Positions 28,495 through 64,000 of a stretch of 64,000 nt of DNA are shown piece after piece. This DNA comes from Penicillus capitatus. Its lineage: Eukaryota > Plantae > Chlorophyta. The notes beneath the pieces are model-generated. The model made no database searches. It saw only the letters and a list, made by a program, of their open reading frames with translations, and had not been told where the DNA came from. The position numbers were made by a program, and so were the translations under genes. Position 1 is the first letter of the stretch. The number at the start of each line of letters is the position of its first letter. The DNA lies in contig OZ287714.1 in assembly GCA_965649825.1 (NCBI GenBank), forward strand, positions 186,001 through 250,000. Direction: 5' to 3'.

Positions 28495-28668
28495 CGAGCG
28501 TTTTAAACGGCGATTAGTGATTCTCTCGACTCAGTTTTCCGCAAGCTTCGTTTTCAAGTCGATCAGGTAAAAGAGCCAGTGCGGCATGAAGAAAAGATCT
28601 TTGCCAGCCACCTTGCTCTACGCTGATAGTCTATCATTACGATTTCGCGTCATTAGTCTTTTGGCCAC

Positions 28669-37677: not shown

Positions 37678-37935
37678 AGTCGTTGATGTGACATTTGCGT
37701 AAGAAATCAACGACACAGAAAAAACAGTAATTATAAAATTCGACCTCATGTCTGTCGTTCTGTTACTTTCCTTACTGCGCAAACGTGATTTCATGGGAAG
37801 CCTTCAGCAATTAATCTTCAATCGTCTAGAACGACGGTTTGTCTCATAATCACAGACTGTAAGCAGCTTTCTGGACGTGTTAAATTGTCGTCATTCTTAA
37901 CAAACGGAACCTTCGTGAAGTGACGCGATCCGACG

Positions 37936-37954
37936 CATACATACATACATACAT
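37936..37954. repeat. (CATA)n microsatellite upstream of QSOX
   Basis: catacatacatacatacat read directly. Confidence 0.8.
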
Positions 37955-37995
37955 CGTTTCTCTGAACGCTCGCACAGGGACGTCTACGGCGCAAG

Positions 37996-39468: not shown

Positions 39469-39512
39469 GGCACGTTTTTTGGGAAGTGGGATGCCCATGG
39501 ACCTTCCCTCGA

Positions 39513-40551: not shown

Positions 40552-40573
40552 CTACTCGAAGACATGCGTCTAC

Positions 40574-41369: not shown

Positions 41370-41871
41370 TTGTCAAAAGACTTGACACTTCTGCGGGCGT
41401 TGCTGTGACATTGCATCACCCTGAGGCACAATTGCCATATCCCTGCCTATCTATCAGAATAGACAACCTGTGATGCTTCCGAATGGCCTGCGCCTCCACA
41501 CCGTGATGACAGATCTGTTGACATATACGAGAAATGAACATGCCTTATGGAAATGCGTCTTCTGAACTTTGTTGTCCACTCCTGTCCCCAGAAAGGCAAA
41601 GAATGTATTCCAGACGTGTATTGGCACCCGACTCTGTTACATAAGAGCAACAGGATACATGCATCCAGGACTGCTGTCGAGAAGACATTGAGTCTCATGA
41701 GCTCTTTCTTGAACACATGGATATCGATTCGTTGCATCTGGTTTTTGTCGATGGTCTCGAAGATATCATCGGCCGCGTCATACTTTGCGCAAAGTGACAC
41801 TTCTTGTCCACTGAGCACGATGCATACTATTCGCTCCATTTCGATTCTGCGTGTGTTCGTTCGTTTTCTCG

Positions 41872-42920
41872 ATCGGCATTCCGAAAGAGGTTCTCCGAGA
41901 TGGAAGCGCTGGCAGATCCGGCATACGAACAGGTCGTTCTATCAAAAGGTGTTTAAACTGTCGCTGTCAGATGTGTGTTTGATTCCATTGCTCTTCTTTC
42001 CAGCCCCTGGATACGAGTACAAGGACGAGCAAGGATGCATACAGGGTCCGTTTCCCGCCATTGCCTTTTTCACCTGGGGTCTCAAAGGACTCTTGCCTCC
42101 GACGATCACACTGAGACGCCCAGGTCGTCGAGAATTCCGTCCCCTGTCGTATTTTGAATCGGAGATATTGATTGTCGCTCGAATTCAGTTAACAAATCAG
42201 ATGCTGTATAGAAAGGAATGGTTCTATCTGGATGCCAGTCAACAAGTCCAGGGACCCTTCTCCGCTGCAGACATGACTGGATATGTGGCCACGCGTTACA
42301 TGAGGGAATCTGTCAAGTTTTACGGAAGAGCCATCCAACAAGACAACATACCGCCGCCATCTGCAGCCTCTCCAGAGTTCCACAGTTATGGACATCTCCT
42401 CGACAAAACAATGAAAGAATACAGGGAAGAGATCAAGGTGCATGTCATCCGAGATTCCCCCTCTTAAATAAAGACACGTGTGTTGTGTTAGCGCTGGAGA
42501 GAAAGAGTGTATGGAAGGGAGGCATCCATGAAGCATCCGGATACAAGGGAAATGGCAAATGGTCTGAACAACGGCGTGGAAGCATCTTCAGATGCGGGAT
42601 CGATGAGGACCTCAGCTCTGCCCATATTGACTCCAGTTCCGCCCTCATCGATCGAAAGTGTGACGCAAGTCCCAGAGCTGACATTCAATGAACTGAGAGA
42701 TAAATACACCCACCGTCTCTTCTCTGATCCGGAACAGGTCTGGTATGTGGTACACGAGAACAAGGTTATTGGCCCGTTTGACACGTTGGAGTCGCACGCT
42801 TCTCACTTCGATGCACACAAGCTACTCGGCAGCACGAGAAGAAATGTACCCTTCTCTGATAAGCAAGTCTTTGCCACCTTTGAAGAACATCTCAATCGAT
42901 TGCATCATGCTGGCATATGA
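41872..42920 (+). CDS. Protein with three GYF-like domains; start not resolved
   Basis: YEYKDEQGCIQGPF, WFYLDASQQVQGPFS, WYVVHENKVIGPF; intron after YREEIK (~42439-42491) joins ORFs 41547-42467 and 42507-42920. Confidence 0.7.
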
Positions 42921-43045
42921 TGGTATGGTGATTTTGGTTTGAATGGCGTTTCTGTGTTGTTGTTATTAAGGAAGAGATGTGTGCGTTATAAACAATGTTT
43001 GATAAAAGTGCATCCATTACAGCAACAGATTTCCGGAATTCTTTG

Positions 43046-44482
43046 TCAAGGATCAGTGGCTTTGTTGATCACGGATGGTGCAAAGTACTGTCCTAGTACA
43101 GGAAAGGACATCCAATCCTGTGGATATCCCGCCCACCAACGATGACTCTGCTTCTCTTTACGGACTGTCAGAAACCGAAATGCAGCTTGTTCGGATGCAA
43201 TGCACCATGGCTTACATCTCTGCAAACAACGACACTGGCACACCTCCGTTCAAAGACTGGAGAGGCATGGAGGCACCTGTGGCTTTGTAATGAGGACGGC
43301 GGCTGCACGAGATGCATCCCATCCCGGATTTGGAGATTGCGCCGCCAAAGCCAGCATGTATGCAGTGGCGAAGGTGTCACCGGCACCGTTTGTGTCGATG
43401 ACCTTGTCAACTTTCGTCGCATTGATGTCCATCTGAGAATATCCTTCAACAAATTCTGTTGCTCCTTTGTCTCCTCGCGTAATCAGCAATCGATCACTGG
43501 AGGACACCACCTTTGCAAGGTCTTCTTTAGACCATGGATCAGATTCCACATCGGACAGGAAAACAGATACCCCTTCACCCAAGCTTTTCTGCAGATGCAC
43601 TCCAATGCGTTATGTTTCGGAACAAAGGGATGCGTGCCAGCAGGAGAGGATGTGGGGCATTGTAGGCAAACACTTTTCCATCTGCAGCTGTGTCCCTCTG
43701 AAAGCCTTGTGCTGCCAGGCCAATCTGCTGAGGCAACAGCCGGTTCTGAATATCTGTACACACAGAGAACCCAATCTGTCACATCATGAAAGAGAGATAC
43801 TCAAAACGACTTCTCCATTTGACAAAGGAAGGCGAATAGACATCTGTGGGGAGTAACGGCATGATCAAGACCGTCTTGGCCAAACGGCACTGCAGAGGAA
43901 CGTGGTGCAGATCAAGAGTGATGGAAGGTCGGCCAGTGACGTGCAACACACGTTTATGACCTGTCACATCATCCGCCTTCACTGAACAGTCCCTCATGGT
44001 TGTCGAATCTCACCCCACCACGTGTAGGTGTGCACAAATGTCAGCGATTCTTTGTCTGGCACAATATGCAGGTCGTGATTTTTAAAAATAGACAAATCGG
44101 CATCTGGCCCAGCAGCTGCAGCAATCTCACTGTCTTGAGACATTCACACATGTGTAGTCGTGGACTCACTCGTCACAACACAAGCTCTCTTTCCTTGTGC
44201 TTCCAGTACTGCCGAAGCATAAGAAATCGCACCACCCTGCCACACCATCCATGATTCCTCAAGTATCTATACATGATGTGAAAGGGGAAACGCACAACGG
44301 TGCGGTTGCCGTCGACGATGTCGATTGTCACGTTTCCGACGAGCAGCACTTCGGGTCTGGACACAGACAACAGACTTTCTGGATCATTGCAGTTGAGAAG
44401 ACCCGCACCGAAGCCGCTGAAGCATCAGCAGTGTCCCAATGGCAAGTGCTGCCGTCAGAGCGAAGAACGAAATGTGCCGCAT
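43046..44482 (-). CDS. PfkB/ribokinase-family carbohydrate kinase with N-terminal hydrophobic signal/anchor; multi-exon
   Basis: VLLVGNVTIDIV, GGAISYAS, LITRGDKGA, DTNGAGDTFATAYM (PfkB signature 2). Confidence 0.85.
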
Positions 44483-44679
44483 GGTTTCCCGTCGACGCGG
44501 TTATCGCAGTAAAGGATGACGGTCGTAGATTCTCCGGCTCACAAGTATAGACAATGCAAAGGCGAAGCCATCGATGACGTCACATCACAAAAAATCCGAC
44601 GATTCAAAAAATAAACAATCGAACAATGAGAAAAGGACACCAGGCATCAGGATACTCCTCAAGATGCCGCCGCCATCGT

Positions 44680-46564
44680 CTAGTCTTGATATCTCATGGA
44701 GCTCTTCTCGAATCCAATAGTGGGAAAGTGCTTAGCATACAGCGTCACATCATTACCCAGTGCTTCGATCTCCGGAGATTTGTTCTGCTCTAGGTATCGA
44801 TTGAAGTCTTTTACTTTGGAGCCAATCTCTTTTTCGGCCTTGGCCTTAATGTCTTTGGCAATGACGACCCCGCGATCGACGAATTCTGCGACTTTGTCGA
44901 AGTCGCGTTCCGTGAATCCGCGGGTCGTCAGTGCTGGCGTCCCCATGCGCAATCCTCCAGGGATCATGGCACTGACGTCTCCAGGGACAGTGTTCTTGTT
45001 GCATGCAATGTGTGCCATTTCTAAGACGCGTTCCACCCGTGCGCCGTCGACGCCTTTCGGTCTGAGATCCAGCAACAGCAGATGGTTTTCTGTTCCCCCG
45101 GACACAAGGGTGTAGCCTCTCGACATCAATCCATTCGCCAACGCTTGGCAGTTTTTCAGAACCTGAATCTGGTATTCCTTGAACTCTGGGCTCAGGGCTT
45201 GTTTGAGGGCGCAGGCCAATCCAGAAATCGTGTGATTGTGGGGTCCTCCTTGGAGGCCAGGAAAGACGGCGAAGTTGATTTTGCTATCCAGATCGTACAT
45301 GATCGGCGTCCCTTTCTTATCGACGCCTTTCTGGCCTTTCCGATAGAAAATCATCGCGCCGCGAGGGCCCCTCAATGATTTATGTGTCGTGGTGGTCACC
45401 ACGTCGCAATGCTCAAAAGGACCAGGAATGACATCTGCTGCAACCAAGCCACTGATGTGTGCCATGTCTCCTGCAGGGACAGCATTGAGAATGAGCTGCC
45501 GGTAAGATAGAATACAGCATTACCCAATAGAATAGCCTTCGCTTTGTCAGCAATCTGACGCATTCTTGGGTAATCATAGTGTCGAGAATAGGCAGAAAAG
45601 CCAGCAATAATGATCTTCGGTCGGAAAAGCATCGCCATCTCCTCAAGTTTGTCATAGTCAATGAGGCCAGTCTCTTCGTTCAGGCGATAAGCCATTGTCT
45701 AAAGGACAGAAAGATATGCGGACGGGATCATGAGAAGTACGATCGGCATTTCGATGTACCTCGAAGTAGATGGAGACAGCTGAGATCTTTTTTGTGTCTG
45801 TTTGGTATCCATGACTCAAGTGACCTCCATGTGGCAGATCCAAAGCCATGATTCGATCGTGCGGCTTGAGCAGTGCTGTGTAGACTTGAAAATTGGATGG
45901 TGATCCAGAGAGGGACTGCACATTGACACCCCATTTTTCGGGATCTAACCTATAGGCCTCTAGTGCCCGTTTCTGACACAGACTCTCTGCCATATCGATA
46001 AACTCATTGCCACCATAATATCTCGCTCCTGGATATCCCTCAGAATACTTGTTTGTCATGACAGATCCAACAGCCTCCAACACGGATGCAGATGTAAAGT
46101 TTTCAGACGGAATCAATTCCAGTCCCTGGGAATACAGTGATCTTCTCACTCAGCCTTGGGCAGATGAAGAAGAGGGCAGCACCTTGTACTGGCGGTTTTT
46201 CTCTTTTTCGATGATATCGAACAATTCAGGATCCATCTCGGACAGCGGAGCATTCATCTTCGACACCCATTTCTACAGTTGTCATTGAAGGGGATGAAAA
46301 ACGATGTCCGTCTGATGGCACTATACCGGTAGTTCTTCTGCCTCTGGTGACGCCGCCGGCTGCGAACACACATAATTGGCGAAGAAAGCACGTAACGGAC
46401 AAGGAGCTTACCACTGCCGCAAAAGACTGCGTGGCCAAAAGCTGAACAACGAACAAGAAATGATGAGCACATCGGCTTCTCGGATTCGAGGGAGCAGATC
46501 ATACCGGTTGAAGTCGGGTCACAAGGCTTCTGACTCCAGATACCGTCCGCGTCAATCCATACAT
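44680..46564 (-). CDS. SHMT: Serine hydroxymethyltransferase, mitochondrial type; multi-exon
   Basis: [65 protein letters not shown]; Arg/Ser/Thr-rich presequence [20 protein letters not shown]. Confidence 0.97.
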
Positions 46565-46903
46565 GATGGAACAAAGCGTCACAATGGGCGACAAGAAGAG
46601 AGATGAAAGAACAAGAGCGACACGAGCAAACGCGATTCTATACTACCTCAAATGGCGTACGACGTTGTTTGTTCAACGTCACATCTTCGCCCCTTTCGTT
46701 TCACTTAATGACCAATCGCTTCTTTCATTTCGTCGAATGTCTTTCAATGGGAACCATTGTTAGCGATCGTTCAGCACAAGGACCCTTCCCATCATCTAAA
46801 CCCTTTCCAAATGTCAAAAAGCTAAAAACGAAACGATGTTATGCGTTTGAACATTCATGACGCACTCATGTAATGTTTGTTCTGCAAAAGAGCTCAAGCA
46901 GAT

Positions 46904-48764
46904 TTAGACGGCGGCTCCGCCGGCTGCGGCCAATGGTGCGGACACAAGACCCAAAGATGTAAAGACTTCGTGAGCCTTTGAGTTCTTTTCCGTTTTGTTT
47001 TCGCGGTCGATGGCAAAACAGACAAAAATAGTGTTGACGGCATCGATGAGCAGAGTGGAGAAGAAATGCAGGACACTCATCATCAGGATGAATGAGATCA
47101 GGAACATGTACCAAGACCATGCACGGACATCTGTCAAATCATCTTCGTCGTTCCAAGTGTTTCTGGCAGCCAGAGCCAACACGACAGCCACAGATCCCGA
47201 CATCAAGAACGAACATACAAACAGGACGATGGGCGGGAACCACCTGACGTATGCACAGACGCTCTTTTAGCCATATACAAGACAGGTGCGTGTTTCTTAC
47301 CAAATAGCATAGGCATTGATGAAATTCTGAGTCATCATGTTCACCACACCCTTTCCAGCCGAGAAAAACGATTCTCCCGTGATGGCCATTCGGACGGTGG
47401 CGAAATCTGTCACCCATTCGATGATATGGGCAATGAATCCAATCAAACAGGCCAGACAGGCAGCCAGCCATTTGAATCGCGAATTCTCATCCTGTGCTTG
47501 TTTGGCAATCCATTCGGATAGTCGACGAATGATATTGGAGATCGTCAAGATCAGGCTGCTCAAGACCAAAGATCCAAAGGATGAGGTCAGCGCAAACCTA
47601 AAGCAAAGGCTTTTATGACGAGCACCTGCCAGTGAAGGTAAGGACGTACCCTAACGATTTCATGATAGACATGTTTCCTCGGTTCTCTTCGTCTGCGAAG
47701 TACCACTGAGAAACGACTCCAGCCACGACGTAGACTCGGATTTGGTTCAGTAAAAAGATGACCCAGATAACCATGATGAGAAGGAGGACCCAGTAACCGG
47801 TTACCCAACCATCCATGTTCCAGTCACAACAGTCCACATCAAATCCCGTGAGGTAATGCACACACTCGTCAGGGAAAAGATCTCTATCTGCTGTGTTATT
47901 GACATCGAATGTTCCATTGGTGAGTGCCAGAACACCAAAACACAGCAGTCCTGTGAGACAAGCCAATAGGACGAAATTGGTACACACACTGAAGAAGACC
48001 AGATCAAGGTTGTCTCGAATGCCATCTGCACCCAAATCTAACAGCTTGCTGGTAAGATTGAGCTGGGAATGCAAAAGCAGTAAGGGAATGGCAATGACAA
48101 CGCCCACACAGATATACGCCCAGCCCCACTTGTCCTCGTACACGACAATGAGAATGATCCCAGCAGCCAGAGGGACAGCGACGAGAAGAGTAGCCACAGT
48201 GTACACCATGACTGCCGCAAAGTAGGAGAACAGCAAAATAAAGATAAAGCCCATAACAACGGCAGCACCGGTCGAAGCAAGCACCCAGACCCATGCATGG
48301 TCCAAAAACTCAAGGAAACTCGACTGGTTTGGGTCTCGAATAGCGACCTCGCCCGGTTGCTCGCCGGGAATGGCAAAAGCTGCTTGTTGCTTTAGGGACC
48401 TCCTAAGCGGCGTCTCGCCGTCAACCGAATCCATAGCCACGACTGACTCCGTTTCGGAGGCGCTGGTTGCGTTCGCGCCTGACTCCGACTCCGGGAGGGG
48501 ACAGTAGTCCGGATTCGTGTGATACTCTTTGTCGAACAGCCGAGAAGCATGGTCGTTCCTGTGCAGAGAGAAGCGTCATGTGTGTTGCTGTCGCGAAACG
48601 AAGGCGTACATGTTGACGCCGGCGTAGATCCCGAACCCGAGGGTGAGTCCGACGAGGAGGAGGAAGAACACTGTCCATAGGAGGTCCCTCACGGGTCGAT
48701 TATCGTACTCGAACCCGGGGCCTCCCTCTGGTTCCTTCTCCGTCGGTTCCGAAGTCTCAGGCAT
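46904..48764 (-). CDS. Choline transporter-like (CTL/SLC44) membrane protein; multi-exon
   Basis: RPVRDLLWTVFF near the N-terminus, multiple TM helices, VVAGVVSQWYF, FGSLVLS, FATVRMAITGESFFSAGK, DAVNTIFVCFAIDRE. Confidence 0.9.
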
Positions 48765-48846
48765 TTGGAGATCGCACGCAAACTCAAAATGTCGCAAAAC
48801 TGACGTGCCGCGTTATATGCCGCGCCGCTACTGCATTTATGACAAG
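48765..48846. promoter_or_regulatory. Candidate bidirectional promoter (82 bp between divergent ATGs)
   Basis: CTL ATG at 48764 (-) and TTC4 ATG at 48847 (+); contains TGACGTG and GCCGCG-type GC-rich motifs. Promoter function is inferred from geometry only. Confidence 0.5.
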
Positions 48847-50343
48847 ATGGATAATGATGCTGAGAACGACAGCGATGCTGCTCTACCGGCACTGCTGTGG
48901 GATACGCTACCCGAAAATGCAGAAAACCATCCAGACTGTATGGCCATTCATTCGCTGATGTATGACGAGTCGACACTGGAGGAGCAAATCGAGAACTTCA
49001 AGGTGAGCAGTGCGATTCTGAGCACTTGTGATCCTGAAGGTTGCTGCTGCGTCTGTGCAGGAACAGGGAAATCAGAGACTGAAAGTGGCACTCAAGAGCA
49101 ATAACAAACTCTACTTTCAAGAAGCGATTAAATACTACACGCAAGGCATCGATGTTAAACTGGAAGGGCGCCCCGAATTGCGATCTGTTCTTTTCAGCAA
49201 CCGAGCTCAGGCACAGATTCATCTGAGTTAACTGAGCTTCGATGTGGACATCTTGAGACAGAGAATGCATGGTCTGTGACTGTTTAGAGAACTGGAGGAA
49301 AGCATTGGATGACAGCGAGACGGCGATAAAGATTGATGCAACGAACATTAAGGTCACTGTGCATCCAATGTGTTCTGCTGGAATGTCTTTGCTGGAAGGC
49401 ATACTATCGCGGTGCCAAATCTGCGCTAAGATTAGATGAAGTTGCCACCGCATTGCATTACTGTGAAACGGGATTGTCCCAGGATCCTTCAAACAAAGAC
49501 CTCGTTCAACTCTCAAACGTTGTCACCCACTCAATCATTCTTTATGCTCTCGCCGAGACGAGCGGCTCTGCAGGATGCAGCACGGAGAAACGCTGTGATT
49601 GAAGAGCAAAGGAAGCATTCGGAGCAGGAGAAGGCCACACTTAAACGGGATGCTGAAGAACTCTTGGCGCAGTTTGCTAAGAGGAATATCAGGTTGTCTT
49701 CTGGACACAGATCATCATGTTCAGCATCGTTTTTTGGCCAGACTCTGTCAATCGAACTTCAAGGTGGGCAAACGGAAGCCATTCGTTGACGCAGATGGAG
49801 TTCTGCACTGGCCCGTGCTGTTTGTCTATCCCGAATCAATGCAGCAAGATATCATTGAGGATGTATCTGAAACAGATTTGGTCTCGGAACTCCTGGATGT
49901 GGTAAAACCGAACACGGATCAGATCGCTTTCTAGTCACACCGTCTGCAGATGTTTTCTTCCGAGGCTCCCCCACTTCCGTGGGATACAGCTAGGGAGTAC
50001 AGACGGGACACGATTGACGTCTACTATCTAGCCAATGCGGGAGAGCCTTTCTCTCATGTCTGTAGACGTTCTGGCATGCATTCGTTTTGTTGATCCACCT
50101 GTGTGACACTAGGGAGAAATGGAGAGTGTGTTGATGGGAGAATATCACGGGGATCCAGAATTGCATGCCCCAAAGATGTACGGAGAACGAGCAGCCTCCT
50201 TTATACATGTCCTACCCAGTTGGAGCATCCACAGTGTGCTGAAGAGAACAGATTGCATTGTTCCTGGTGTTCCCACTTTCTTCATCGTGGCTCGAGGATC
50301 AAACTACCACCGCCGATTTCTGGAATCTGTTGCAAGAAGATAG
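48847..50343 (+). CDS. TTC4: TPR co-chaperone TTC4/Cns1 family; multi-exon
   Basis: ENFK|EQGN, AIKYYTQG, LFSNRAQAQ, IKAYYRGAK, wheel domain LHWPVLFVYPE, VPGVPTFFIV. Confidence 0.9.
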
Positions 50344-50791
50344 AACGAACTAGCTGTCTTGGATTCTCTTAATACCTCTGAGTTCACTCGTTGGACGCTA
50401 ATATCCAAGACAACAATGCTTATTCATGGCTGTCATTCCGAATGGCGACACTCGTGTCGAACGCAGATAATATGATGAGTGACGAACATGCTAACAGATG
50501 GCGGAAATGGCTGGAGTTTCTTCGCGGCACATCTGCAGATTCGCATGTTACCGAACACGGAACTTCATTATCGACAGTAACACGTTGAGTTGACGTCTTC
50601 ATGTTACTGACATTGATCATGCCAAACGAAGGATAGTCAAAAACACCGTGAGAGACAAAGAGCAAACTTATGTCTCTCCTTCAATCCCCAATACAGTCTT
50701 CAAAAGTAAGTTATGACGAATGCTGAAACCATGAATTGTTTTTTGGTCTGGAAGACTGAGTCTCCATTCAAAGGCAGGACACAGCATGTGA

Positions 50792-53700
50792 TCAGAAAAA
50801 TGAAACGAGAATGACATCTGTAATCATGTCTGAGACGATTGCACCGAATCGTGCAACCACTTCCTTGCTCAGTCCATCAACGTCTTCAATTCCGCCTTCA
50901 TCCTCATCAAACAGAGGGCGACAATGCAATTCTCGACGATCATTGTCGTCATAGAGTTCTCTAAACCTCTCAAACATCATATCCGTTGACGCGTGGATTT
51001 TGCATCCCATGAAGAAGATGTTCCTGTCAATGATCTTTCGTATGATAGCATCTGTCTTCAGCCCAGTAGGATCTCCATCTGGAAACCTATTATACGGTGA
51101 ACCGTCTAGTCGATATCTTTGCAGAATAGAATGCGAAGATACCTGTCGTCAAATCCTCCATGGAGTTCGACGCCGTGACCAGGTGAATCGGCAATAAGGA
51201 TGAGAAACCGTGCTTTGCTGCTCCACTTCAGCTCTGTAGCTGCAAGCAATCCGCCCAACACATCTTCGGCGCCGTCATTTCCTCCAAATGCTTCTTGTTC
51301 CTTCAAAAACTCTCTTAGCTTGTCTGTTCCACTCTCAAATTCACAGCGACAGATTTGGTATTCTTTTCCATCTCCATAGTCTCTGTAAGCCACCATTCCA
51401 AAACGAATGTCCACCGTCATATCAGGATTCTGATTTGTGATCTCCCTCTGGATGTGCTCAGATATTTTCTAAACAAAACAACTTCGATGCATCTGCAGGC
51501 CACGAATGAAACAGTGTTCTTCACCTGTACTTGATCAGTGGCTGCCTCAATCAGATCGTCCATAGACGATGTACAATCCATGACGAAGCAGATGTCAACG
51601 GAGAAGGTCGAAGGACCACTTCCGTCTTTATCTTTCAAGAATTCTTTCTTTGCTTTCAGCATCTTCTGGAGTTCAGGAAAGAGACGCTCTGGATTATCTA
51701 GAAGCTCTTCCATTGCGGTCTGATTGCCCGTCAGCATTGCCACTGCCGCTCCTTCATCCTTTGCTGCTGCTGCATTGCCTTCGTGCAGTCTTGAAATCTC
51801 GACCTTGTCCATCACACTTTCCAATGCGTCCGGCACGAGCTGAGGCAATGCGGCTGTGATCCATTTGTTGTAGCACTTCTTAACAAAGGAAGGTTCGACT
51901 CCCACATCGATGGCAAGAACATCAATCCCTGACTCTTCCAGTTTCTGCAGAGAAGCTGCAAGTCTGACACCCGTACTACCGTATCCATCTGTGAGGACAA
52001 TGATCTTCTTTGCCCCTCGACAGTCGCTTCTGTCAAGCAACCGTTCAGCCAAGAGCAATGCATCAGCATCTTTCGTCACGGGCTCATTTCTCTGTTTCAT
52101 AAGACTGATGAAAGCAGCGATGGACACGTCTTCCCACATGGCGTCTGCCAACTTCACTGGAAAAAAGTTATCACCAAAGAGAAGAAGGGTAAAGTTCTCG
52201 AGATTCATCTGCTTCAGAGCGCCAATCAATAAGAGAACTGTCTCGAGGACACATGTTTGTTTTCTGCCATGCGTCATTGAAACAGATATATCCAACACGA
52301 TGGCCACCGAATACTCGGATTTGCCACCTCCTTTTCGGCTGGCAAAGATCTTCTTCTCGGCTCCCTTCGTCGCCAAGTGCTTGATGAATCCTGGCAGATG
52401 GATCGACGGTCCTTTGATATCAGGTCTCTTTCTTGCAGAGACATTCTGTGGAAGGAAATCCTCCAATGCCTCTGTCATTCTCTCGATGTCGACGCTCAGT
52501 CTATCTTCTGCTCGCATCCAGGCAGCCGCTGCTGTCTTCGAACGTGTGATCTGTTCGGGACTTGCCAATAGACGGGTGAATGCTTCATGCCAACTGTCAA
52601 TGAACTTCTCAGCCAATTCTTCTTTGCATTCAGGGCTCTTGGTGACCATCTGAGTCATCTGGATGCTATAAGGCACGGCGTCTTGCTGATAATCGCATTC
52701 ATAGAAATCCTCTCGTCGGAGACCTGGTTTGGAAATCTGCTGCTCTCCCAGATTCTCAAGCACAGCATCATAATTCGTGTCCAATCTCAGCTCAGAAAAC
52801 CAATCATCTGTTCCAATTTGTGACAAATCAGACGATTTGGTATCATGCTTTTTTGTAGGTTTCCAGTACTCATTCAGCACAGCCTTGATCATCTCGCTGA
52901 TGCATGCTGGAAGAGTAACAAAATCCTGTTCAACATCCAGGACTTGAAAATTCAGTGCAACGCGATCCCATAAACCTTGAACCATGTCCAACATCTCTCT
53001 GTGTGCTTCGTTCGTCAGATTCAGCACAACAAGTGCCATAGATCTCCTCGCGCATATAACACTATAGTCTTGTCGTTTTCTCTCTTGAGTGATGCCATCC
53101 GTGATCAAGAACATGACTCTGTGGCATCGAGGGTCTTCGTCTTCTTCTGATGAACTGGTAGGCCAAACGGTCTCTGCAGCATTTGCAATGGCAGTTGCTA
53201 TATATGTGCCTTGATCATATGAGAAGGACTCAATCACTTTCTGTCCGATGACGTCAGTAAAATGATCTGTGACCATTTTCAGCATCTGTTGAGAGTTTCG
53301 ATCGCCAAAGCGGGTCACTGCAAATGGCTGTTCCATTCTTCTCAGAATCTCCATGGTCAATGCCAACGCCACATTCATCTGAATACTCTTGCGCTGCATA
53401 GATCCAGAGTTGTCAATCAAGATACACCATTCAATTCGATGCATTTCCACAGTCGTCTGATAGAATTGTTCAAAACACGGTTGACATCGCTGCATGATGG
53501 AAATCAACATGCGAATGAAGTCTTCATTCTCCAGCAGCTTTTCATAAGTAGACTTACGATTGGTATTTAGATCAAGTTTGATCGGCTCGTCCAGCGTCTT
53601 TCCGCCCGTCCTTGCATTAATCTCCTTGGCATCTTTGAAAAGCTGCACCATGTCCTCATCGTCCAATGTCTTGTCCAGTAGCATTTTCTGAGCAGAATAG

Positions 53701-56700
53701 TCGCCTTCGAAATCAACCATGTCATTGTCTGCCGCAGCCTGTTTGACCTGTCCACGTTCCGCTTCGCCGGGCAGTCCCCGACCATCTCTCTCCTGATCGT
53801 CGTCAATCTTTTTGGACGTATCTATATGCTTCGGCAACTTGACATCGGACTCTCCAGCCATGTCTTCTTGGCCCGATTCTCTGCGATTGATATACTCTTT
53901 TCCCAGATGATGTATCTGTGTATCTGTCCCAAGGTCAATAACGAAATCGAGCATGTTGCGTTGTCTTTCCAGACTCTTCTGCTCTTTTTCAAAGTTGTCC
54001 AAATCTTCCATCATCTTCCGATGGTAGGCAGGCCGTCCTTGCAAAGTCGATGAAGGATAATCCCTTTGCAACCCTGAATACAATGACATGCCAGGTCTTG
54101 TGTATGTATTATCCATCCATCCGCCATAGTTTCCCTGACGGCCCATATGTCTGTAGATAGACGGCATGATGAAATCGTCCGTAGTGTTCTCTTTCACAAC
54201 AACGGTCGATCCACATTCCTGCAGTAATTTCCTCGACATCTTATGCAGACCTTCTCTGGGAATGATGTTTAGATATACAAGGACACTGTCTTGCATGGTC
54301 GTGAATGCACTTGGCATTGTGAACAAACTGCAGGATTCGAGGTGTTGTTGCAGAAAGCAGAAAACTGAGACGACGTCGATGCCAGAACAGAGAATGGCAC
54401 CCTGTAGACTGTCGACTTCACTGTTTGCGGCATACCTGCTCTTGCAGACACTTGCTTCGAAGAGCAACGTCCACATAATCGCCGCCTTCTTCAATTTGAC
54501 TAGGAAATCAATGACATTCTCAAACTTCAGAACACGACACCCTTCCATAGAAGACAACTTCTCTGCTCCAGATTCAATTGATTTATGGATGTCTTTCATC
54601 ACATTCTCCACTTCTTCCAGTTGTTCAGATATGCTTTGACCGCCATCTGCTTCAGGTGGCGTCTCGTCTTTGGGACTCACACGACGTGGTGGTCTTTCAG
54701 ATGGTTTGTTGCCTTGATCTCTTTCTGTCCCTGATGGACTCTGGACATCATCCAACAACCAGCATTGCTTGTTTGCCTCTTCTTCTTCGACTGCATTCTC
54801 AGATGGATTGTGTACACCGCCGCCAAGTTCACCTGATCTCATGTCCGATAAGTTATCTATTTCAGTATTATCATCCACATCTTGTGTTTTTGGCGGATCT
54901 GTCTTTTCGAATCTCAGTGCGTTGGAATCTGGAATGGCAACGCTGTCTTTCTCTTTCCACGGTCCATTGTAGAATCGAAAGAGTGATGTCAAAAGAGCTA
55001 TCTTAGAGACAGCACTTGCTGTCGGGGAATTGTTTTTCTTTGAAAGTGCAAAGGCATAGAGGTTGAAGAAGATGCTCAAGACACACTGGCTTCTCTTTCT
55101 GTGTTGACCCCATTCTCCCAGATCGCCAACAGCCTTGGTCAAGTTTTCGATCTTTTGTGCCCCATCAAGAGAACCCTCTTCGACTGGACCCTGTGAACAG
55201 ATTGCATTCTTGGCTCGAATCACTGCTCCCAGACAGTCAAATGCGCTTCGTCTCTCAGGATCACAGTCCAGCACTTCGTATACGTAATCGAGAATTTCCA
55301 CTTCTCCTGTCTCGACGAATTGGCCGATGGTTGCAAGCATCGTATCGATAATGTTCTGGGAATACAGTATCCGTAACATGTCGACCTTTATGGACACAAT
55401 CCCCTTCGCCGTCCTTCCTCTGTCGATTGCCGTAAGAATTTGACGGAGAGAATCCGACTTGGGGCCAGCATCCACCAGAGAACGACAGAGTGATATGACG
55501 TTCTCTTTGGATAATCTGGAGGGAAAGGATGACAGTGCGTTGACGATCATATGACCCTCTCCCTCTCCATTCAGAGTGGACGCGAACTGATAGATTCTCG
55601 CCAGCAGGATCCAGGGATGTGTCTTTGACTGGAACTGCGCAAGCCTAAGCGCAATTAATGCTGTTTGCAAGTCCTTTAGCGATTCGTCGATGCTCTGTCT
55701 TTTTTCTTCTTGGTCAAAGCGCTTCTTGTCGATCTCGGGACTCGTGATGTCCTTCAAGTAGTCGAACCAGTAGAAGATCTTTGATTCAATCTCACTGTCC
55801 ATCTCTTTGACATCCTGCATCATTGTCTCTCTTGGCATGGCATCGGCAGCACGCCATTCTTGCACACGGTTAAGGGATCTCGCAGGATTGGAGGAGGAGT
55901 GCACATGTCTTGATGTAGTGGCGCTGTATCCATCGTGTTCCAAACTGACACCCATCTCTTCTTTATAGGCTTGCGTCTTCAGTGACATCATTGTCGCATT
56001 GTCCATTTCGCATTTCTGCTGGAGAACGGCAAAGAAAGCCGACGACACGATTTCTCTAATGAAGGAGAACCTCTGCCGATAGAGATCCAAGGAACCGTGA
56101 AGCTGCCATAGAGGAGTGAGTATATTGCTCATACCACATGTCTGTAGCAGGGATCGAGCCGTTTGCTTCAATAATCCAATGTCGCAATCGGACTTGAAAA
56201 ATTCAGAGTTTTTGACGTCTTCTTTGGACAGCATCTCGATCAAGTGCAGTGCAAGACAATTTGTGGATGGCTGCGGATTGCATTTTAGCGAAATTCTGCA
56301 GAAACCATGAAGGACATCCCAACCATCGTTCGAGCACGTCTTGTTAAGTATGTCTCGGCGATCAGCTTCGATAAGTTGGATAAGCATCTCTTCCTTGGCA
56401 CTGGTGTCAGATCTCACTGCATTTGCAAAGCAAGACTTCAGATGAATGGGATAAAGACACAACTCGATGGCATGGGAGAGCTTCTCTTCTCCCCCAGAGG
56501 ATCCTTGACATACTGCAAGTATGCCATCCAGCAACACACATGCAGCAAGGGGATTGTCATCTGCCAGTGGCATGGACTTCAGCCATTCAACACACCCAGC
56601 AAATGTCAATGAATCGTTCTGAAAGGCGCTGTAGATTTGATCACATGCAGTGTCCATCAAGAAGGAGCTGGCTGTGTCTAAGAGATTGGCTCTGAGCAAC

Positions 56701-59700
56701 GCCACAGCAGCATTCCATTGTTGTTCTTCCGGACATGTCGCATGCATCACCACATAGATTGCTTGAGCCAATGCTTGTCTTTCTTCGTCCACATGCATCT
56801 CTTCCACAACTTTGACGAAGCTACCGTGGAGCGCTGTCCCTTTGTCGGATAGGTATGCCTTCATCAGATCTGAAAACCGCCATGTGAGTGACGACAAACA
56901 GCGTTTGCCACTTCCTGATCGTGCTGCGGTTAGTTTTTCATCGCAGAGTTTCACTGCAGATTCGACTGTTTGGTCGAGGATCTGTTTGACCACTTCACCG
57001 GTAAGCGCCCAATGGCATCCCAGCATTTCCAGTTCGCACAACATCTGCAGAAGAGCCATATGCTCCGAGGCAGATTGCCTTTGTTGACACAAGAGTCTTG
57101 CAATCGGCAATATCCTTGGCAGAGAAGAGTGGAAGTCAGCACTTCCCGCATGTTGGTCGATCGAACCATCTCCTTTTGCTTTCCACAGTTCAAACTTGGA
57201 GTAAGGGCCAGACACACATCCCACAATCGCTATCTTGCGCTGTAGGAACTTGCACTTGGCAGGATTCTCATGCAGGAAAACCTTGTCACGCGATTCGACG
57301 AGCACATTCTCCGCGATCCATCCAGGGCGGTCTCCCACCTTGAGCCGGATGTTCAATCCATTCTGCCTGTTGTTGGTTGGTCGGAACTCGCTCGGAATGT
57401 CTTCCGATCCAAAATCCCATGGACCCCTCTCATGGTGCGTCCTTGACTGAGAATTCAGCAGCGTCGCCGTCTCGCAGCACACGGATGATGGCTTCGTGGT
57501 CACGATCGAGAATGGCGAGTCTGTTGCGACATTGAACGACAGCATTGGAGCGTTGCGTGGCTTCCAGTTCTGGATGAGCTGCCAGTCCTGGGCAGTAACA
57601 TCGAAGGCGAAGTCGGCAGGCGGTTGCAGACACACGACAAAGCTCATCTCTTTTCCAGTCTCTGTGACAAACACGATTCTGTGTTCTGACTCCTTCAGCT
57701 GCTTGACCTTCCAGGTCATCTGGAATTCTTGTTCGCTGCCCTTTTCGAGATAATACTCCTCTTGGTCAAAATGAAAATATTCACTCTTTGGTGGATACAC
57801 TGTGACAGCAATCTGTTTGTGCACGAGGGTATTAGCCGCTGTGAGGCACAGTTCTTTGCCATCTTCACTCTCTCTTACGATAGACGCCAGCTTCTTAGGA
57901 TCGACGCTAAAGACGACCTTCTGCTTTTCGAAAGAGGGTGTCGGATCTTGCCAAGATGCATTGATTCGTAGACCCCGAGATGCAGCTCCTTCGACAAAGA
58001 TCTTGAGCTCCTCGGTGTGCTGGCCTTCTTTGTCATGGCTGATGGACAACTTCACGGGGTATGTCTTCCCCACGTCAACTGTCCCACGCGAAAAGGAGAG
58101 CTTTACATTTCGACTGTCTGTTCGGAGTTCAAAGACAACGGGCACTTGGCCGACATTCTTGATCTGGAAAGCGCGACGGGCTGTTCGCCGGACTTTGATA
58201 TCTGAGAGATACCAGGTATCATCGATTTTTCGATGACGGTTATCAAACAGTTCGAAATGGGGCTTCTTTATCTGGACAGTGAGCGGCAGGTATCTGTAAT
58301 TCTGCATGGCGCCTATGACAAGAAACGTTTCGACTGACTCTTCCTTCAATCCCGACTTCAACCAGACGGTAAAGGGTCTCTCGTTCCCTGCTTGGAGAGT
58401 CATGCGTGATTCCTCCAAGGACAGAGAGCTGGTAATGCGCATGTGCTGGATCTGGGATTTGACGAGAACGGGCAGAGTTGTCATGTTCTTGACAGACACA
58501 GAGCGTTTCTGCGCTTCAGATGCAGTTCGTACAACTCCGAAATTAATCTTCGACATGCTCAGCTGAATGGCTAGTCTCTGAATGTTGACTTTCAGAACAA
58601 ATGTGGCATCCAGCTCTTTATCGCCAGAGGTTATGCACCACGTCTCTCGTATCTCTCCATGTGCAGAGTCTTTGAGTGCGAACTCCAGATTCTTCGAAGC
58701 CTCGCCAGCTAACTGGATATTCTCTGTGGCTCTCAAAAGAAAGCAGGCGGCGTTAGAGTCTTCGGGTGTGATTTGGATCTGCAAATTGAAAGAAGATCGA
58801 TTGACAATCTCCATTGTGTAGACACGGGTCTGTCCATGCTTTTTGCTAAGGTCTTTGGCATGTAAGAGAGTTCCAAAATCGATCTCCTTTCTTGCATCGC
58901 TCAGAATCAAGCCTCTACTCTCCGAATGAATGATAACAATCTTGGGAATGTTGCTGAGGTTCGTTTGGGAGAGGTATTTTGGAGTGTGATTTCTGCAAGT
59001 CCCTAGTTCCCTCTTCCGTTTGACGAGGTCGGAAAAACAGCCAGACCACTGCACTTGTGCTTGGGCAAGTGCTTTAACAGCCTTCAACCAGTTGCTTGTC
59101 TTGAATTCAATGAGATCCTTCTCTCCGTGCAGTAGACAAGATTGTTTCATACGACTGATCAGCTCTAACTGCTTGGTATCGAACAAGTCGAGTCTTCTTT
59201 CGGTTGGAGATCTTAGACAGTCCAAGCATGAACGACAGAATTCATCCAGATAAGAATTCTGCACTGCCCTTCGACTGAAGACTTCCATTTTGATAACAAT
59301 GGATTGGATCTCTTCAAACGCTTCTTGCACCTTAGGCGACCAGCCTTTTTTCGAGCTCGAGGTGGAAGGACAACTGGATTCGCGTGTGCTCATTCTCCAG
59401 GTGGAAAACTGAGAACGCTTGGCGACTGCCTTGGCTAGTGCACCTGCTGCTTGTTCGATTTTGAAACGGTCGTGAACAAGAACTTCATTGGCTTTATTGA
59501 AATTCCTTATGGCAGATCTCCATTCTTCCACTTGGTGAAACTGCTTACGAGCTTGATGATACCACTGCATCTCTTCAACTTGTCGAGAAGGAGGCAGTTG
59601 CCGAAGTGCATAACGATCCCGATATCCGTATTCAGGGACGTCCTCGAGAGATCTGCGATGCTCCTCTCTCTCGAAGTTCTCCGCTAAGCATCTCATGCGG

Positions 59701-62700
59701 TTCGTGTAATCCAGGATACCCCCTCGGGATGATGGTTCGTAACCTGTCTCTGATGTTTCCAGACTCACGTAGATCGCCTTGGTGTCAATCGAAAAAGTAA
59801 TGCTGGGACCATGATATTCCATTGGTTTGCACTCGAGGTTGGTGTAATCGCTTTCCAACTCCTTCATTGTGTAGCGCTTTCTGTATTCTTTTCTTCTTTC
59901 GTTGTAAACCACGGTCAATCGAAAAGACTCATCATCATTGACGTCGTACGAAATCTCTTTGTTCTCTGCGGAATAGGTTTGCAGCGAGACGTGGTGCACG
60001 TTTCCAGCAGTGACGCCATTCTCGTCTGCATAGATCTGAAAGAAAGTGCCTGGGTTTGTTATGCCGATCGACAAAATGCTCAAAGTGATCTTGACAACCT
60101 TTCTCCTCAGAGGACCATAATCTAAAGGGGCATCTGTCATATTGACTCTCTGTTGCCGAGAAGTCTGCCCACGCTGTTCCCGTTGCACCCGTTGCGCCTT
60201 TTGTTGCTTTGGGCGACGTTTCATAAGCATTTCCAGATAGCTGCTCATGGCGACGAAGGCATCCAAATTCTCAAAACGCAAACGGTCTGGCAGATTCTTG
60301 GACTGGGGTCCAAAAAGCCTCCATGCTTGTTGATAGCAATCAAACATCTGCTCTGTCGAAAGAGTGAGATTGTCATCGTCAAAGAACGCAGTGGACAGCC
60401 TTTCTTGCATTTGCCAGCCTGTGTCTTCTACCATGAGATGCCTCATCAACGGTTGGTTTTCGATCAATTCATCAAATCCCTTCTCGCAGGTCGTGTACAG
60501 TTCTTCAAACTTCTCTGTGAGATGCTTGACATTTTTTCTCAAGTCGTCGACATCCTCTCCAATCTTCGCCGAATAAATAAACATGTCTTTATGAATGCCT
60601 GCATACAGACATCGCAAGATGGCGCATGCTTCATCAAGAACACCAACTGTTCCTTCTTTATTATCATTCTCTGGTTGGAGCACCAGCTCTGCGGGTTGCT
60701 TCATCAACTGACTGTGTGCATTAAGGAACACGACACTCTTTTCAATCAGAGTTCTGGATGATTGCAGCACGCTACATGTCTTCCACCATTCGAAAAGCTT
60801 CTGTCCCGCAGATGCTGGGAGTTGGTTTACTAGGAGGGATATTGCGTGCAACCGGTCCATGAGTTCTCTGTCATTGAGTGAGCTAAGACCAGCTGACCCC
60901 TCTCCTTTCACATTTGGAGGTTCTTTTTGGAGATGCAAAGGTTGCAAGAACTGCTCTAAAGGCAACCGCGTTATGCTACCGGCACCGGACTCGTCTTTCT
61001 CACAGTTCGAGGCCACTGGGTCGACGTCTCTTTTTGATTCTCGGAGAGATCGCATGCAACACTCAGCGCTTTCAAACCACCAGTGATCCAGTGCTCTTGT
61101 CAAGAATTCCACGAGAAAAGGACCAGGCCGCTGTCGGTGTCGAAGCATCACTTCTGTCAGCTCGGAGAACTGTTCCTTCAGCTCCTTGAATACATCTTGC
61201 ATCTCGTTTATTTGGAGGGACAGAGGTCGCTGTCGACAGGCTTCGAGCAGCACATCTTTGACTTTTAGCAGAAGCTCTTTTTCCTTCTCTTGTCCTGAAC
61301 AGCTGAACATTCGAAAATTATTTATTTTCTTGACCATGTCTCGCATTCCCTGGATAAACAGTCGAGATGTGTAGGAGACGGAGGCGTACAGATGTCCATA
61401 TTTCGTCAGGAAAGTCTCGATATTCCACAAAAGCTCAAAAGGATCTGCCAGAAATTCATCCACTGTTCTTTCTGTGGAAAGGAACCAGTTATGCCAGATG
61501 CATTGAACCGACTCAAATACGCGCCGCAATTCTGGTGCATCATTCAGTGGCAGTGGTTGAAAATGACCTTCCTTTTTGGCCTCTTGAACCCTCGGAAGCA
61601 ACTTCATTGTGTACAGATCTGTTTTTTCGATGCTGTCTATCTTTGAACAGCAAAGACTGACGGTGGACAGGATCAGGTTCTGTGTGTAAGCTGCAGATGC
61701 GAAGGCATCTGGTTTGCCGATGCAACGCTCCTTCCATTCCCTATATTTGCTTTCGTCCTCCAAGAGATCCACACACAGTTCCCGGATTCCACCATCATTC
61801 GCCGCAGGACCTGTGCAGGCCTCTCGAAGTGTCTCCCACTTCTCTCTGAGCTTTTTGGAATCTTGATGCGGACTGTTTTGGTTTTTACTGAATTCCAGAC
61901 TTGAGGCCGTGCGAAGGAGATACAGAATGCGTTCATTGCCAATCGAGAGCAAAGTACACACGTCTTGAATCGCTTCTCGCACAGGATCACCCTTTTCGAG
62001 GGAACACAGGTCTTTTGTGCAAAAATCTTCAAGTTTTTTTATCCATCCATTCAACTTGTTTTCGACGGATCCCTCGGGGGATGGATGATCCTTCAGGAAA
62101 TCATTCGCCTGCCGTCCAACTTCCTTGCAGACCTCCCCTGCGGCCTCTTGGTTTGCAGCTGTCTCTCCATTGAGCATCTCGTGGAGTTCTGGCAAATCAG
62201 TTCCCAGCATTGACTCACACAGGTCTAGACCTTTGGTGGCTAATCCTTGAAATCTGCTCGACAAGTCTGCGCACAAATCCATCTTTCGTCTGTCGATTGC
62301 GTTTTTATTTTCTTCTATCTTTATCTGTAAATTCCTTAGATCTTTTTTTGTATCATCTAGCTCTTGTAGGGAGCGGATAACGTCAGCCTGGCAATGTTGT
62401 GAGAACATCGTTTCTGACATAGGATATCTTTGGTACTGTATTATCCTCTCTTCCAGTCTTCTTTGGTTTTTGAGCCGAGTGCTCCATCCTGCATCCAGAT
62501 CTGCTGCTCGTTTTTGAACTTCCTCTTTGGATGACAATCGTATTTCCTTAACAAATTGAACGAACTTTGTACGAGACAGCCAGACGGACAGCCAGACGAA
62601 TTGGAAAGCGATCACGATTTCTCGAACGATTGGTTGTTTGTCCTGATCCTCGATGCATCCCAGAAACGAATCCCACTTTCCATCTTTAAGTGCTTCAACT

Positions 62701-64000
62701 GCAGTGTTCATTTTTTCGGCGAAATCTCTAAAGATCTGTGCTTTGGTGCCGCGATCAGTCAACAATGCATGACGCGCCAACAGTCCTCCACTCCCATCGA
62801 CATCCAGACAAGCGGATTTTCTTGGCTGGTGTGTGATACAGTCATGGGCGACGCTTCTGTTAAAACTGAAAATGACTGCAACATCGTCTTCCGTGAGCTC
62901 AGGGCATAAGAATGAGAAGTTTGCACTTGCCATCGACGAATGCGAAGCAAGGCGTGTTCTCAGTTTTGCTGCATGCTCCCTCAGTTTCTCAAAGGTCGAA
63001 ATGGCTTGCAGCACCGTCAGCGTCTTTCCAGAACACATGTCGAGTAGACCGATGATTCCATTTTTTATGTCCTCAGCTCGCCACGCCCGCAGCAGTTCAC
63101 GATATGGTCCTAAGAGATGTTTAGCTTTCATGCTGATGAGCTCGTCGACAGCTGCATGGATAAGAACATCGTGTACCTCTTGTTTACTGGCTTCAAAAGT
63201 CAACTGCAGCTCCAGTTTGTCAGAGAATACATGCAGCTGAGATAATTCAGTGACCCTTTTACTCTTTTCCTTTGGATCCTCCGCCTTTTTGTAACACCGG
63301 ATGATTTCAGCTGCTTTCTTCGATAGAGCTTGATGTTGACAAGACTGCATCCATGACATCAGCTGTTCCAAGAACTTTTCGGTATCTTCTGGTCTCTCAA
63401 GTTCCTCTGTCAAGCACTTCTCTAGATCGTTCATCGGATTCGTGTTCGTCCAGCCACTTTCAGCAAAAGTGGACGGTAAGTTATTCACTGGAGCGAAGGA
63501 GGATTCTCGCAGACAGCTGTCATACATTATGCTCAACTCTTTGCTTTCTTGTGCCACTGAGAAGTGTTTTTCACTGTCCTCATTCAACATCGATCTATTC
63601 AGATCTTGAAGATTGCCCAATTTGTCGCCGTATCTGTCCAATGTATCCATACTGCACGTTGACGGGTCCAGCCTATCCAGTTCCTTACACGTCTTGATGG
63701 CTTCCCTCATTATGGTGGCAGACGTTTGCTGGGGGCTCTTCTTCGCTTCTTGCCACAGACTTTGATACTTGCTCTTCAGGGTGCGAATCTCATACTTGTA
63801 TCGGTCCAACTGTGAACTCCATCCTGAATCGGGCCTACTCCTCATCAGATTGACATCACTGTCACCGAGTAGATTGCTGTCTTTTATTTCTTTCAGTTGC
63901 GCATACATACACTTCATTTCACCGAATACATCATTCAGACCATTTCTTTGCAGCAAGTCTTCTGAAATGCCCAATTCTTTAATGAGGCCCGTGTATCTCT
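50792..64000 (-). CDS. Paralog of giant gene 1: helical stalk, ASH/Ig array and three VWA domains (5'-truncated; about 4,360 aa in window)
   Basis: Frame is open to the window end (R-Y-T-G-L-I-K-E-L-G-I-S, aligning with DLVDELGIS at ~6821 of gene 1). IDFGTLL/INFGVV Ig repeats at ~57230-58890; MIDAS DNSGS (~53400), DISVS (~52280), DCTSS (~51565); introns 51469-51524 and 51087-51142; stop at 50792. Confidence 0.9.

Follow-up and report, generated by a model that had tools for sequence, protein, structure and literature searches.

We analysed a 64,000-nucleotide stretch of the Penicillus capitatus genome (contig OZ287714.1, forward-strand positions 186,001 to 250,000; hereafter the window), in which a six-frame scan for open reading frames (ORFs) revealed two giant frames at opposite ends and on opposite strands. 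The gene at the window start, on the plus strand, is referred to as gene 1, and the copy at the window end, on the minus strand (50,792 to 64,000), which is the subject of this report, as gene 2; an initial annotation, made from the sequence alone, had described gene 2 as an ancient inverted paralogue of gene 1. Splice sites were read from the sequence. Within the window, gene 2 is built of three exons totalling 4,364 codons plus the stop codon, its 5′ part lying past the window end, and gene 1 of three exons with introns of 54 and 50 nt and 6,641 codons, its 5′ part lying before the window start (Table 1). The long exon of gene 2 ends at the splice donor GTGAAG directly after DQVQ, and its upstream continuation is present in an overlapping locus (L006). 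Both gene 2 introns recur in the orthologue of a related alga (L011), as a 55-nt and a 57-nt intron for introns 1 and 2, respectively, and their sites, together with the phase of intron 2, are the same in gene 1 and in the family members P0154 and P0163. The C-terminal tail of gene 2 is similar to the tail of distant family members.

Table 1. Features of the two giant genes and the interval between them (window coordinates).
Feature	Position	Strand	Remarks
Gene 1 long exon	2..19321	+	AAA4-AAA6, linker, Ig array, VWA1, VWA2, start of VWA3
Gene 1 AAA4, degenerate Walker A	389-412	+	
Gene 1 AAA5	Walker A 2156-2179, Walker B 2354-2377	+	
Gene 1 AAA6	3197-3220	+	
Gene 1 Ig array	11789-13711	+	
Gene 1 VWA1	17423-17968	+	
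Gene 1 VWA2	18527-19048	+	
Gene 1 exon 2	19376..19704	+	
Gene 1 last exon	19755..20031	+	with stop
Interval between the convergent 3′ ends	20032..50791	.	30.8 kb; stop codons 30,760 bp apart
Gene 2 last exon	50792..51086	-	with stop; tail ...DVILVSFF*
Gene 2 intron 2	51087..51142	-	56 nt, GT..AG, phase 2, within the Arg codon of DDR/F
Gene 2 exon 2	51143..51468	-	middle of VWA3; aligned with gene 1 exon 2
Gene 2 intron 1	51469..51524	-	56 nt, GT..AG, phase 0, after DQVQ
Gene 2 VWA3 and tail	50792..51605	-	interrupted by both introns; MIDAS-like D-C-T-S-S at 51581-51561
Gene 2 VWA2	51801..52322	-	Pfam VWA 47 bits; MIDAS D-I-S-V-S at 52295-52275
Gene 2 VWA1	52887..53435	-	Pfam VWA_2 43.8 bits; MIDAS D-N-S-G-S at 53417-53397
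Gene 2 ASH/HYDIN-type Ig array	57129..59036	-	gene 2 residues ~1655-2290; homologous to the modelled gene 1 array
Gene 2 long exon, part in the window	51525..64000	-	frame from 63998; protein residues 1-4158; open frame 4,193 codons

The overlapping locus L006, which comes from a 6.93-Mb contig and was reached by profile search via gene 2's own long ORF (P0006), was 99.9% identical to window 41417-64000 and reached 10,583 bp past the window end. Throughout this extension gene 2 showed no stop codon and three further introns (52, 53 and 46 nt), and the gene is thus open over at least 7,842 codons with five canonical GT..AG introns across the window and L006; because the next called ORF upstream, outside L006, supplies ~526 more residues, gene 2 comprises at least ~8,370 codons, interrupted by five or more short introns. 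Six AAA modules were recognised by six Walker A sites (AAA_5, 154.5 and 92.7 bits). Canonical Walker A and B motifs occur only in AAA1, AAA3 and AAA5, while AAA2 has D-N at Walker B, AAA4 a degenerate Walker A, and AAA6 the sequence GGTCSKKT with D-D; the Walker motif pattern of AAA4-AAA6 is the same in gene 1, with which the AAA region of L006 aligned at 38%. Whether an intact ring follows beyond the window had been a question raised by the initial annotation, and since all six modules are present and undisrupted in L006, the gene 2 finding stands as far as the ring is concerned. Two of the gene 2 introns (L006:952-1003 and 5889-5941) split Walker A at nearly the same place, GVGK/T in AAA1 and GIG/KT in AAA5; the AAA5 Walker A of gene 1 carries no intron.

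Read from its N-terminus, the protein consists of an N-terminal domain, six AAA_5 modules, a linker of ~1,400 residues predicted to be mostly helical, more helical sequence, about six ASH/HYDIN-type immunoglobulin-like (Ig) domains, another helical region and an acidic segment, and three VWA domains; its acidic stretches are short. For gene 1, we infer a total of ~8,400 codons, with the rest of the ring predicted from a 4,617-residue upstream ORF of its orthologue. Pfam scores reached 160.6 bits for AAA_5 in gene 1, and for VWA 49.8 and 47 bits in gene 1 and gene 2, respectively (cut-off 23.8); together with the metal ion-dependent adhesion site (MIDAS) motifs of the DxSxS or DxTxS form, which were found in all three VWA domains of both copies (DNSGS, DISVS, and DCTGS or DCTSS), these scores identify VWA domains with a MIDAS site in both proteins. 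Midasin was the best match of known structure by a wide margin, both for gene 1 (E = 1e-93; AAA5 on residues 1532-1717 of Schizosaccharomyces pombe midasin) and for gene 2 (E = 1.6e-101; AAA3 on midasin residues 895-1054), and because the modules correspond in order, the AAA ring is homologous to the midasin ring as a whole. Searched against solved structures, the middle region gave marginal PapD-like chaperone matches at most, and a profile of the C-terminal module gave weak generic VWA matches only.

The Ig array, a series of beta-sandwich domains, matched Pfam models of the ASH/HYDIN/CFAP65/Cep192 type in both genes, above the cut-off in gene 2 (HYDIN_VesB_CFA65-like_Ig, 28.7 bits versus 25.5) and at the borderline in gene 1 (ASH, 26.9 bits versus 27). 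An AlphaFold2 model of the gene 1 array was all-beta with a predicted local distance difference test (pLDDT) score of 81.9, and the top 23 Foldseek matches to this model were all ciliary central-apparatus proteins (E = 1e-27 to 1e-13), followed by cadherins and titin (1e-13 to 1e-12); the TM-scores of these matches were low (0.2-0.38), and the domain type alone is shared.

The two genes were compared along their common length. BLASTP aligned gene 2 residues 1536-4364 with gene 1 residues 3812-6641 (31.0% identity over 2,946 columns, E = 0) and gene 2 residues 5-1139 with gene 1 residues 2271-3411 (22.9% over 1,173 columns, E = 6e-55), and a global protein alignment covered 4,165 positions at 30.2% identity. 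An E value of 0, combined with the coincidence of two intron sites in position and phase, rules out a chance likeness. Several specific claims of the initial annotation could be evaluated on this alignment: the asserted colinearity from ELGIS to the C-terminus was borne out (over 4,368 residues of gene 1 and 4,357 of gene 2), as was the equivalence of both introns (intron 1 in phase 0 after DQIN or DQVQ; intron 2 in phase 2 within an Arg codon, KDR/F versus DDR/F, before F-x-DGDP), and the sequence strings quoted for a strongly conserved VWA2 are present, with 54% identity between the copies. Identity was highest over the last ~600 residues containing VWA2 and VWA3 (47-54%), intermediate near the Ig array and VWA1 (30-34%) and lowest elsewhere (17-29%). 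The claim of a highly diverged "stalk" holds for the divergence of the middle but not for the name, which is only an analogy; the region in question is a helical linker plus the ASH/HYDIN-type Ig array. The description of a convergent pair enclosing about 30 kb of other genes was accurate, the two stop codons facing each other 30,760 bp apart.

To assess selection, orthologues of both genes from a related alga (ENA ERZ26696514; L007 for gene 1 and L011 for gene 2) were used instead of the gene 1/gene 2 pair itself, because synonymous sites are saturated at ~30% protein identity and the ratio of non-synonymous to synonymous substitution rates (dN/dS, ω) between the two copies was accordingly set aside. 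Gene 1 and L007 were 82% identical at the nucleotide level (window 3-22874), with dS = 0.45 and ω = 0.30 over 6,413 codons; by part, ω was 0.13-0.26 in the AAA and VWA domains and 0.3-0.47 in the middle. The only apparent frame break in the gene 1 orthologue was a 52-nt GT..AG intron. Gene 2 and L011 were 85.6% identical (window 34690-55474), with dS = 0.40 and ω = 0.27 over 1,515 codons, no stop codons and both introns kept, and ω fell to 0.10 in VWA2, the best-conserved part of gene 2. These ratios and the open frames show that both copies are functional genes under purifying selection, in agreement with the earlier proposal that both are intact and selectively maintained: neither gene contains a stop, and the gene 2 ring remains open past the window.

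A further gene-2-type fragment of 2.1 kb was observed in the same ENA sample (L001:3184-5277, equivalent to window 54154-52067), with 88% nucleotide identity, ω = 0.30 and no stop codon. Its edges pass abruptly into unrelated sequence, it lies beside ORFs for reverse transcriptase, RNase H and integrase, and its contig has 38x coverage versus 344x for the contig of the window; the sample thus seems to hold a second, related alga with the L001 piece in transposon-rich DNA. Being so short and having such edges, L001 was set aside as main evidence for selection.

To define the family, a profile of the C-terminal module was searched exhaustively among 1.84 billion protein representatives. A word-index homologue search was blind to this genome and its relatives, the C-terminal 709 residues giving five matches and missing their own ORF and the Ig region giving none, and absences from that search were not used. 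The profile search returned 596 proteins at E ≤ 1e-3, of which 152 reached E ≤ 1e-30, many spanning the full profile, which confirmed that the locus represents a family and not a one-off. Members are often 4,000-7,750 residues long (the longest 7,751), and named ones come from Bryopsis sp. KO-2023 (a hypothetical protein), Mesostigma viride, Chlorarachnion reptans, Adineta steineri ("VWFA domain-containing protein") and Brachionus calyciflorus; the Chlorarachnion reptans sequence was obtained from a transcriptome, which shows that this member, at least, is transcribed, and one metagenomic cluster is labelled "MoxR-like ATPase/YegL". The succession VWA1-VWA2-VWA3 with conserved flanks (WTYxLL, [IF]EWC[IL][LM][VI]DNSGSM) and an upstream Ig array forms the family signature and was found here; the array was detectable in the Bryopsis, Adineta and Mesostigma members as well as in P0037 and P0038. 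Most of the distant relatives carry a fourth VWA domain; in gene 1 and gene 2 it has been lost, although the tail remains. No family member was found on viral contigs, and no description of the family was found in the literature. This is an undescribed family of putative midasin-like machines in green algae and scattered other eukaryotes. Two inserts within the long middle region were also observed among distant members, an OTU-like cysteine protease domain at residues ~3060-3260 of P0037 (Pfam 31.2 bits, above the cut-off) and a RING-like zinc finger at residues ~5240-5290 of P0043 from Chlorarachnion (below the Pfam cut-off), which hint at a link to ubiquitin signalling.

Regarding the origin of the pair, a C-terminal tree (656 columns) united gene 1, gene 2, a third type (P0154/P0163), a fourth group (P0010/P0011) and L002 (a marine metagenome) in one clade with 100% bootstrap support and placed the Bryopsis protein as its sister (96%), and a neighbour-joining tree from 4,685 ungapped columns supported gene 1 and gene 2 as a pair (90% bootstrap). 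Related algae contain three or more types of paralogue. The third type (P0154/P0163, ~8,350 residues) shares both C-terminal introns, with their codons and phases unchanged, keeps the fourth VWA domain lost from gene 1 and gene 2, and lies on other contigs in other gene neighbourhoods, at L009:10001-28206 in the related species and at L008:10001-23585 in the low-coverage alga of the L001 fragment. Since this type has both introns, the shared introns reflect an inherited ancestral gene structure and are not specific to the pair. In the related species the orthologues of gene 1 and gene 2 are also convergent on one contig (4.08 Mb), but ~282 kb apart versus 31 kb here (L007 locus at 1.840-1.871 Mb, with the gene 1 3′ end at ~1.862 Mb and the gene 2 3′ end near 2.144 Mb). 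Synteny with that species holds over window 3-22874 and 34690-55474; window 22875-34689 was unmatched in the fetched related loci, L007 diverging after 22874 and L011 ending at 34690 (the limit of its flank), and a synteny break therefore lies somewhere within 22,875-34,689.

A duplication at the DNA level within one chromosome is the most likely origin of the pair, since the ancestral 3′ two-intron structure was copied together with the coding sequence. The initial annotation had spoken of an old local duplication, of which the age is well supported (~31% identity between the copies versus 80-85% to each copy's own orthologue) and the local origin is likely but not proven. Weighing against the latter, the order of the paralogue types was unresolved on the C-terminal alignment; the tree that joins the two genes is neighbour-joining only, and as they form its longest branches their grouping could be long-branch attraction; and the 31-kb spacing need not be ancestral and may be derived, given the ~282 kb in the related species. 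The unresolved order and the wider spacing, with the presence of both introns in an unlinked third type and the broken synteny within the interval, speak for an alternative in which the two genes are old paralogues of separate birthplace, their closeness resulting from later rearrangement or deletion and their shared introns being silent on any local event. We regard this alternative as rather unlikely, because the two genes group together on the long alignment, lie convergent on one shared chromosome segment in both species, and would have to be two of about three to four family members falling within 0.3 Mb by chance, which is improbable where contigs reach 4-7 Mb. An ancient same-chromosome duplication is thus the likely best account of the pair, with a local origin that we infer.

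Taken together, window 50792-64000 (minus strand) is the 3′ 13.2 kb of an intact giant midasin-relative gene (at least ~8,370 codons) under purifying selection, an ancient paralogue (~31% identity) of gene 1 whose product would act as a remodeller; we consider this account as a whole likely. The observation of the initial annotation is thereby confirmed and its interpretation supported, with the qualifications given on the introns, the local origin and the term "stalk". Midasin (MDN1/Rea1) has a ring that drives a linker, and its MIDAS domain binds an acidic residue of the ubiquitin-like domain of a ligand, whereby assembly factors are pulled off the pre-60S particle. Building on the gene structure, intactness, purifying selection, domain composition and family established here, we propose by analogy with midasin that ATP turnover at AAA1, AAA3 and AAA5, the modules with canonical Walker A and B motifs, would move the linker, that the MIDAS domains at the C-terminus would hold a protein ligand by its acidic residues at up to three sites, and that the machine would thereby pull on or remodel a large assembly, onto which the Ig array may dock as a scaffold. 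In a wider and tentative picture, to which we give somewhat less than even credence, the family would be a distinct single-chain six-AAA lineage beside dynein, midasin and RNF213 that branched early from midasin, joins several MIDAS "hands" and an Ig array like that of HYDIN to a ring of midasin type, acts on a non-ribosomal and possibly ciliary or centrosomal assembly, and includes at least three specialised paralogues, two of them linked since an ancient inverted duplication.

Several results speak against a midasin-like remodeller. The linker (gene 1 residues ~1400-3900) had no sequence match among solved structures at E ≤ 1, the midasin linker included, and its AlphaFold2 model, although mostly helical, was of low confidence (pLDDT 51) and unsuited to a fold search; canonical catalytic motifs remain in just three of the six AAA modules; and our literature search found no biochemical or localisation data for any family member. 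A different function was considered, namely that the protein is a structural or docking part of cilia or centrosomes, or a conflict or immune-type sensor, with the AAA ring as a regulatory switch and not a force generator. A ciliary role is suggested by the fold of the Ig array, closest to ciliary central-apparatus proteins, by the ASH, CFAP65 and Cep192 domain matches, and by the flagellate or ciliated cells found in all named host lineages; yet the low TM-scores indicate a shared domain type alone, and the distribution discriminates poorly, most eukaryotes being ciliated. A conflict role would fit the patchy distribution, the several paralogues, the fast-evolving middle, the OTU and RING-like inserts of distant members and a bpMoxR match of gene 1 AAA5, but ω was below 0.5 everywhere and no positive selection was seen at this resolution. 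We consider this non-motor explanation unlikely as a whole and retain two leads from it within the remodeller reading: the kinship of the modelled Ig fold may point to a ciliary or centrosomal target, and the patchy distribution, the paralogues and the OTU/RING accretions may point to a conflict system.

Comparison with known systems places the family closest to midasin, with which it shares six AAA_5 modules in one chain with module-for-module similarity and a long non-AAA region after the ring, with acidic stretches and C-terminal VWA domains bearing MIDAS motifs. Midasin is single-copy and acts on pre-60S particles through ligands with ubiquitin-like domains (Rsa4, Ytm1). Unlike midasin, which totals ~4,700-5,600 residues and has a single C-terminal MIDAS after a D/E-rich region, the protein described here is nearly twice as long (at least ~8,370 residues) and has three VWA/MIDAS domains with only short acidic stretches, an Ig array, a linker without detectable similarity, canonical catalytic motifs in AAA1, AAA3 and AAA5 only, several paralogues per genome and a patchy distribution. 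That the two genes are simply duplicated canonical midasins serving 60S ribosome biogenesis is accordingly very improbable: the ring does match midasin module for module, and there are a weak AAA_lid_7 match and a weak match to midasin's MIDAS domain, but the ~8,400 residues contrast with ~4,700-4,900 in the solved midasin chains of S. pombe and Saccharomyces cerevisiae, three VWA domains (four in most relatives) with one, and a multi-copy and patchy gene with a single-copy and universal one; moreover, midasin lacks the Ig array, and the linker showed no similarity to midasin's. The multiple VWA domains, the Ig array, the far greater length and the several copies show that the genes are not midasin orthologues.

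The family also resembles the prokaryotic MoxR AAA+/vWA pairs (NorQ/NorD, CbbQ/CbbO and RavA/ViaA), in which a MoxR-type ATPase is functionally paired with a MIDAS-bearing vWA protein, and its AAA modules matched the bpMoxR Pfam model as well as chains of NorQ and CbbQ (E = 1e-8 to 1e-5); in those systems, however, a single AAA module hexamerises and the vWA protein is separate, whereas here all parts are fused in one eukaryotic chain encoded by a gene with introns. Tandem ASH/PapD-like Ig domains are shared with HYDIN, CFAP65, CFAP47 and the ASH proteins ASPM and Cep192, which have neither an AAA ring nor VWA domains. Dynein-related AAA modules in one chain are likewise found in VWA8, the dynein heavy chain (a weak match, E = 6e-4) and RNF213. 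VWA8 also ends in a VWA domain (PMC8517341). With ~1,900 residues and fewer AAA modules, VWA8 nevertheless differs from the present family, as do dynein, which lacks a VWA domain and bears a microtubule-binding domain on a coiled-coil stalk, and RNF213, which has an E3 ligase module; none of the three combines an Ig array with multiple VWA domains.

That gene 2 is a decaying or non-functional duplicate, merely open within the window, is scarcely credible, for although it is more diverged than gene 1 from other members, forms a long branch in the C-terminal tree and has a truncated relative near retrotransposon genes in the same sample (L001), that fragment belongs to a different organism at lower coverage, and gene 2 itself keeps at least 7,842 open codons with five canonical introns, its Walker and MIDAS motifs, ω = 0.27 without a stop in 1,515 orthologue codons, and ω = 0.10 in VWA2. 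An assembly artefact or recent inverted repeat was also considered and rejected, as the arms share only ~30% protein identity and almost no DNA identity.

The usual view of midasin is of an isolated relative of dynein, universal and single-copy, with a single task, the release of pre-60S assembly factors. What is new here is an architectural variant of the midasin-type AAA-MIDAS machine, in which the same six-module ring is also built into a far larger protein with three or four metal-site "hands" and a ciliary-type Ig array, and which survives in green algae, a chlorarachniophyte, rotifers and marine eukaryotes, where all entries found in the databases are annotated as hypothetical. The paralogue pair offers a natural experiment, both copies having been kept under purifying selection at only ~31% identity; the ring and VWA2-VWA3 are conserved and the middle has diverged, which points to the parts that matter and suggests that the copies have specialised. 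At a locus of ~25 kb, the giant gene is broken apart by ORF-based callers, and intron-aware models are now given.

Two minor features of gene 1 were observed in passing. The AAA4 insert (window 769-1026) is acidic and Ser/Gly-rich and contains a direct repeat of ~126-129 nt (769-863 and 895-989, 89% identical), the product of a recent duplication inside this low-complexity loop. The 52-nt intron of the L007 orthologue (GTAAGG..TTTGCAG, at ~9950-10005) corresponds to uninterrupted gene 1 coding sequence at window ~8378-8430, a difference that we read as a probable recent event between closely related species, either gain or loss of the intron (intronisation or exonisation).

In the interval between the two genes, Pfam matches identified ordinary housekeeping genes, for SepSecS, a serine carboxypeptidase (S10), an A2M-like protein, QSOX, a GYF protein, SHMT and a choline-transporter-like protein. 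The introns of this eukaryote were short, of the GT..AG type and 46-57 nt long, and no tRNA gene, Rfam match or tandem repeat was found in the window. The best named relatives of SHMT were from chlorophyte algae (Flechtneria 72%, Scenedesmaceae 70% and Neomeris 67%), which marks the source as a green alga. The SepSecS gene (O-phosphoseryl-tRNA(Sec) selenium transferase, 20258-21500) lies directly downstream of gene 1, an adjacency kept in L007 and L010, and its presence indicates that the alga uses selenocysteine. Within window 22875-34689, where synteny breaks, the serine carboxypeptidase gene is at 27073-28494, and the G+C content falls to 42-45% at 24-28 kb. Two adjoining long ORFs at 33594-37364, with weak matches to A2M, A2M_BRD and bMG10, probably belong to a single thioester-protein-like gene with an intron between them, and the QSOX gene follows next (37996-39468).

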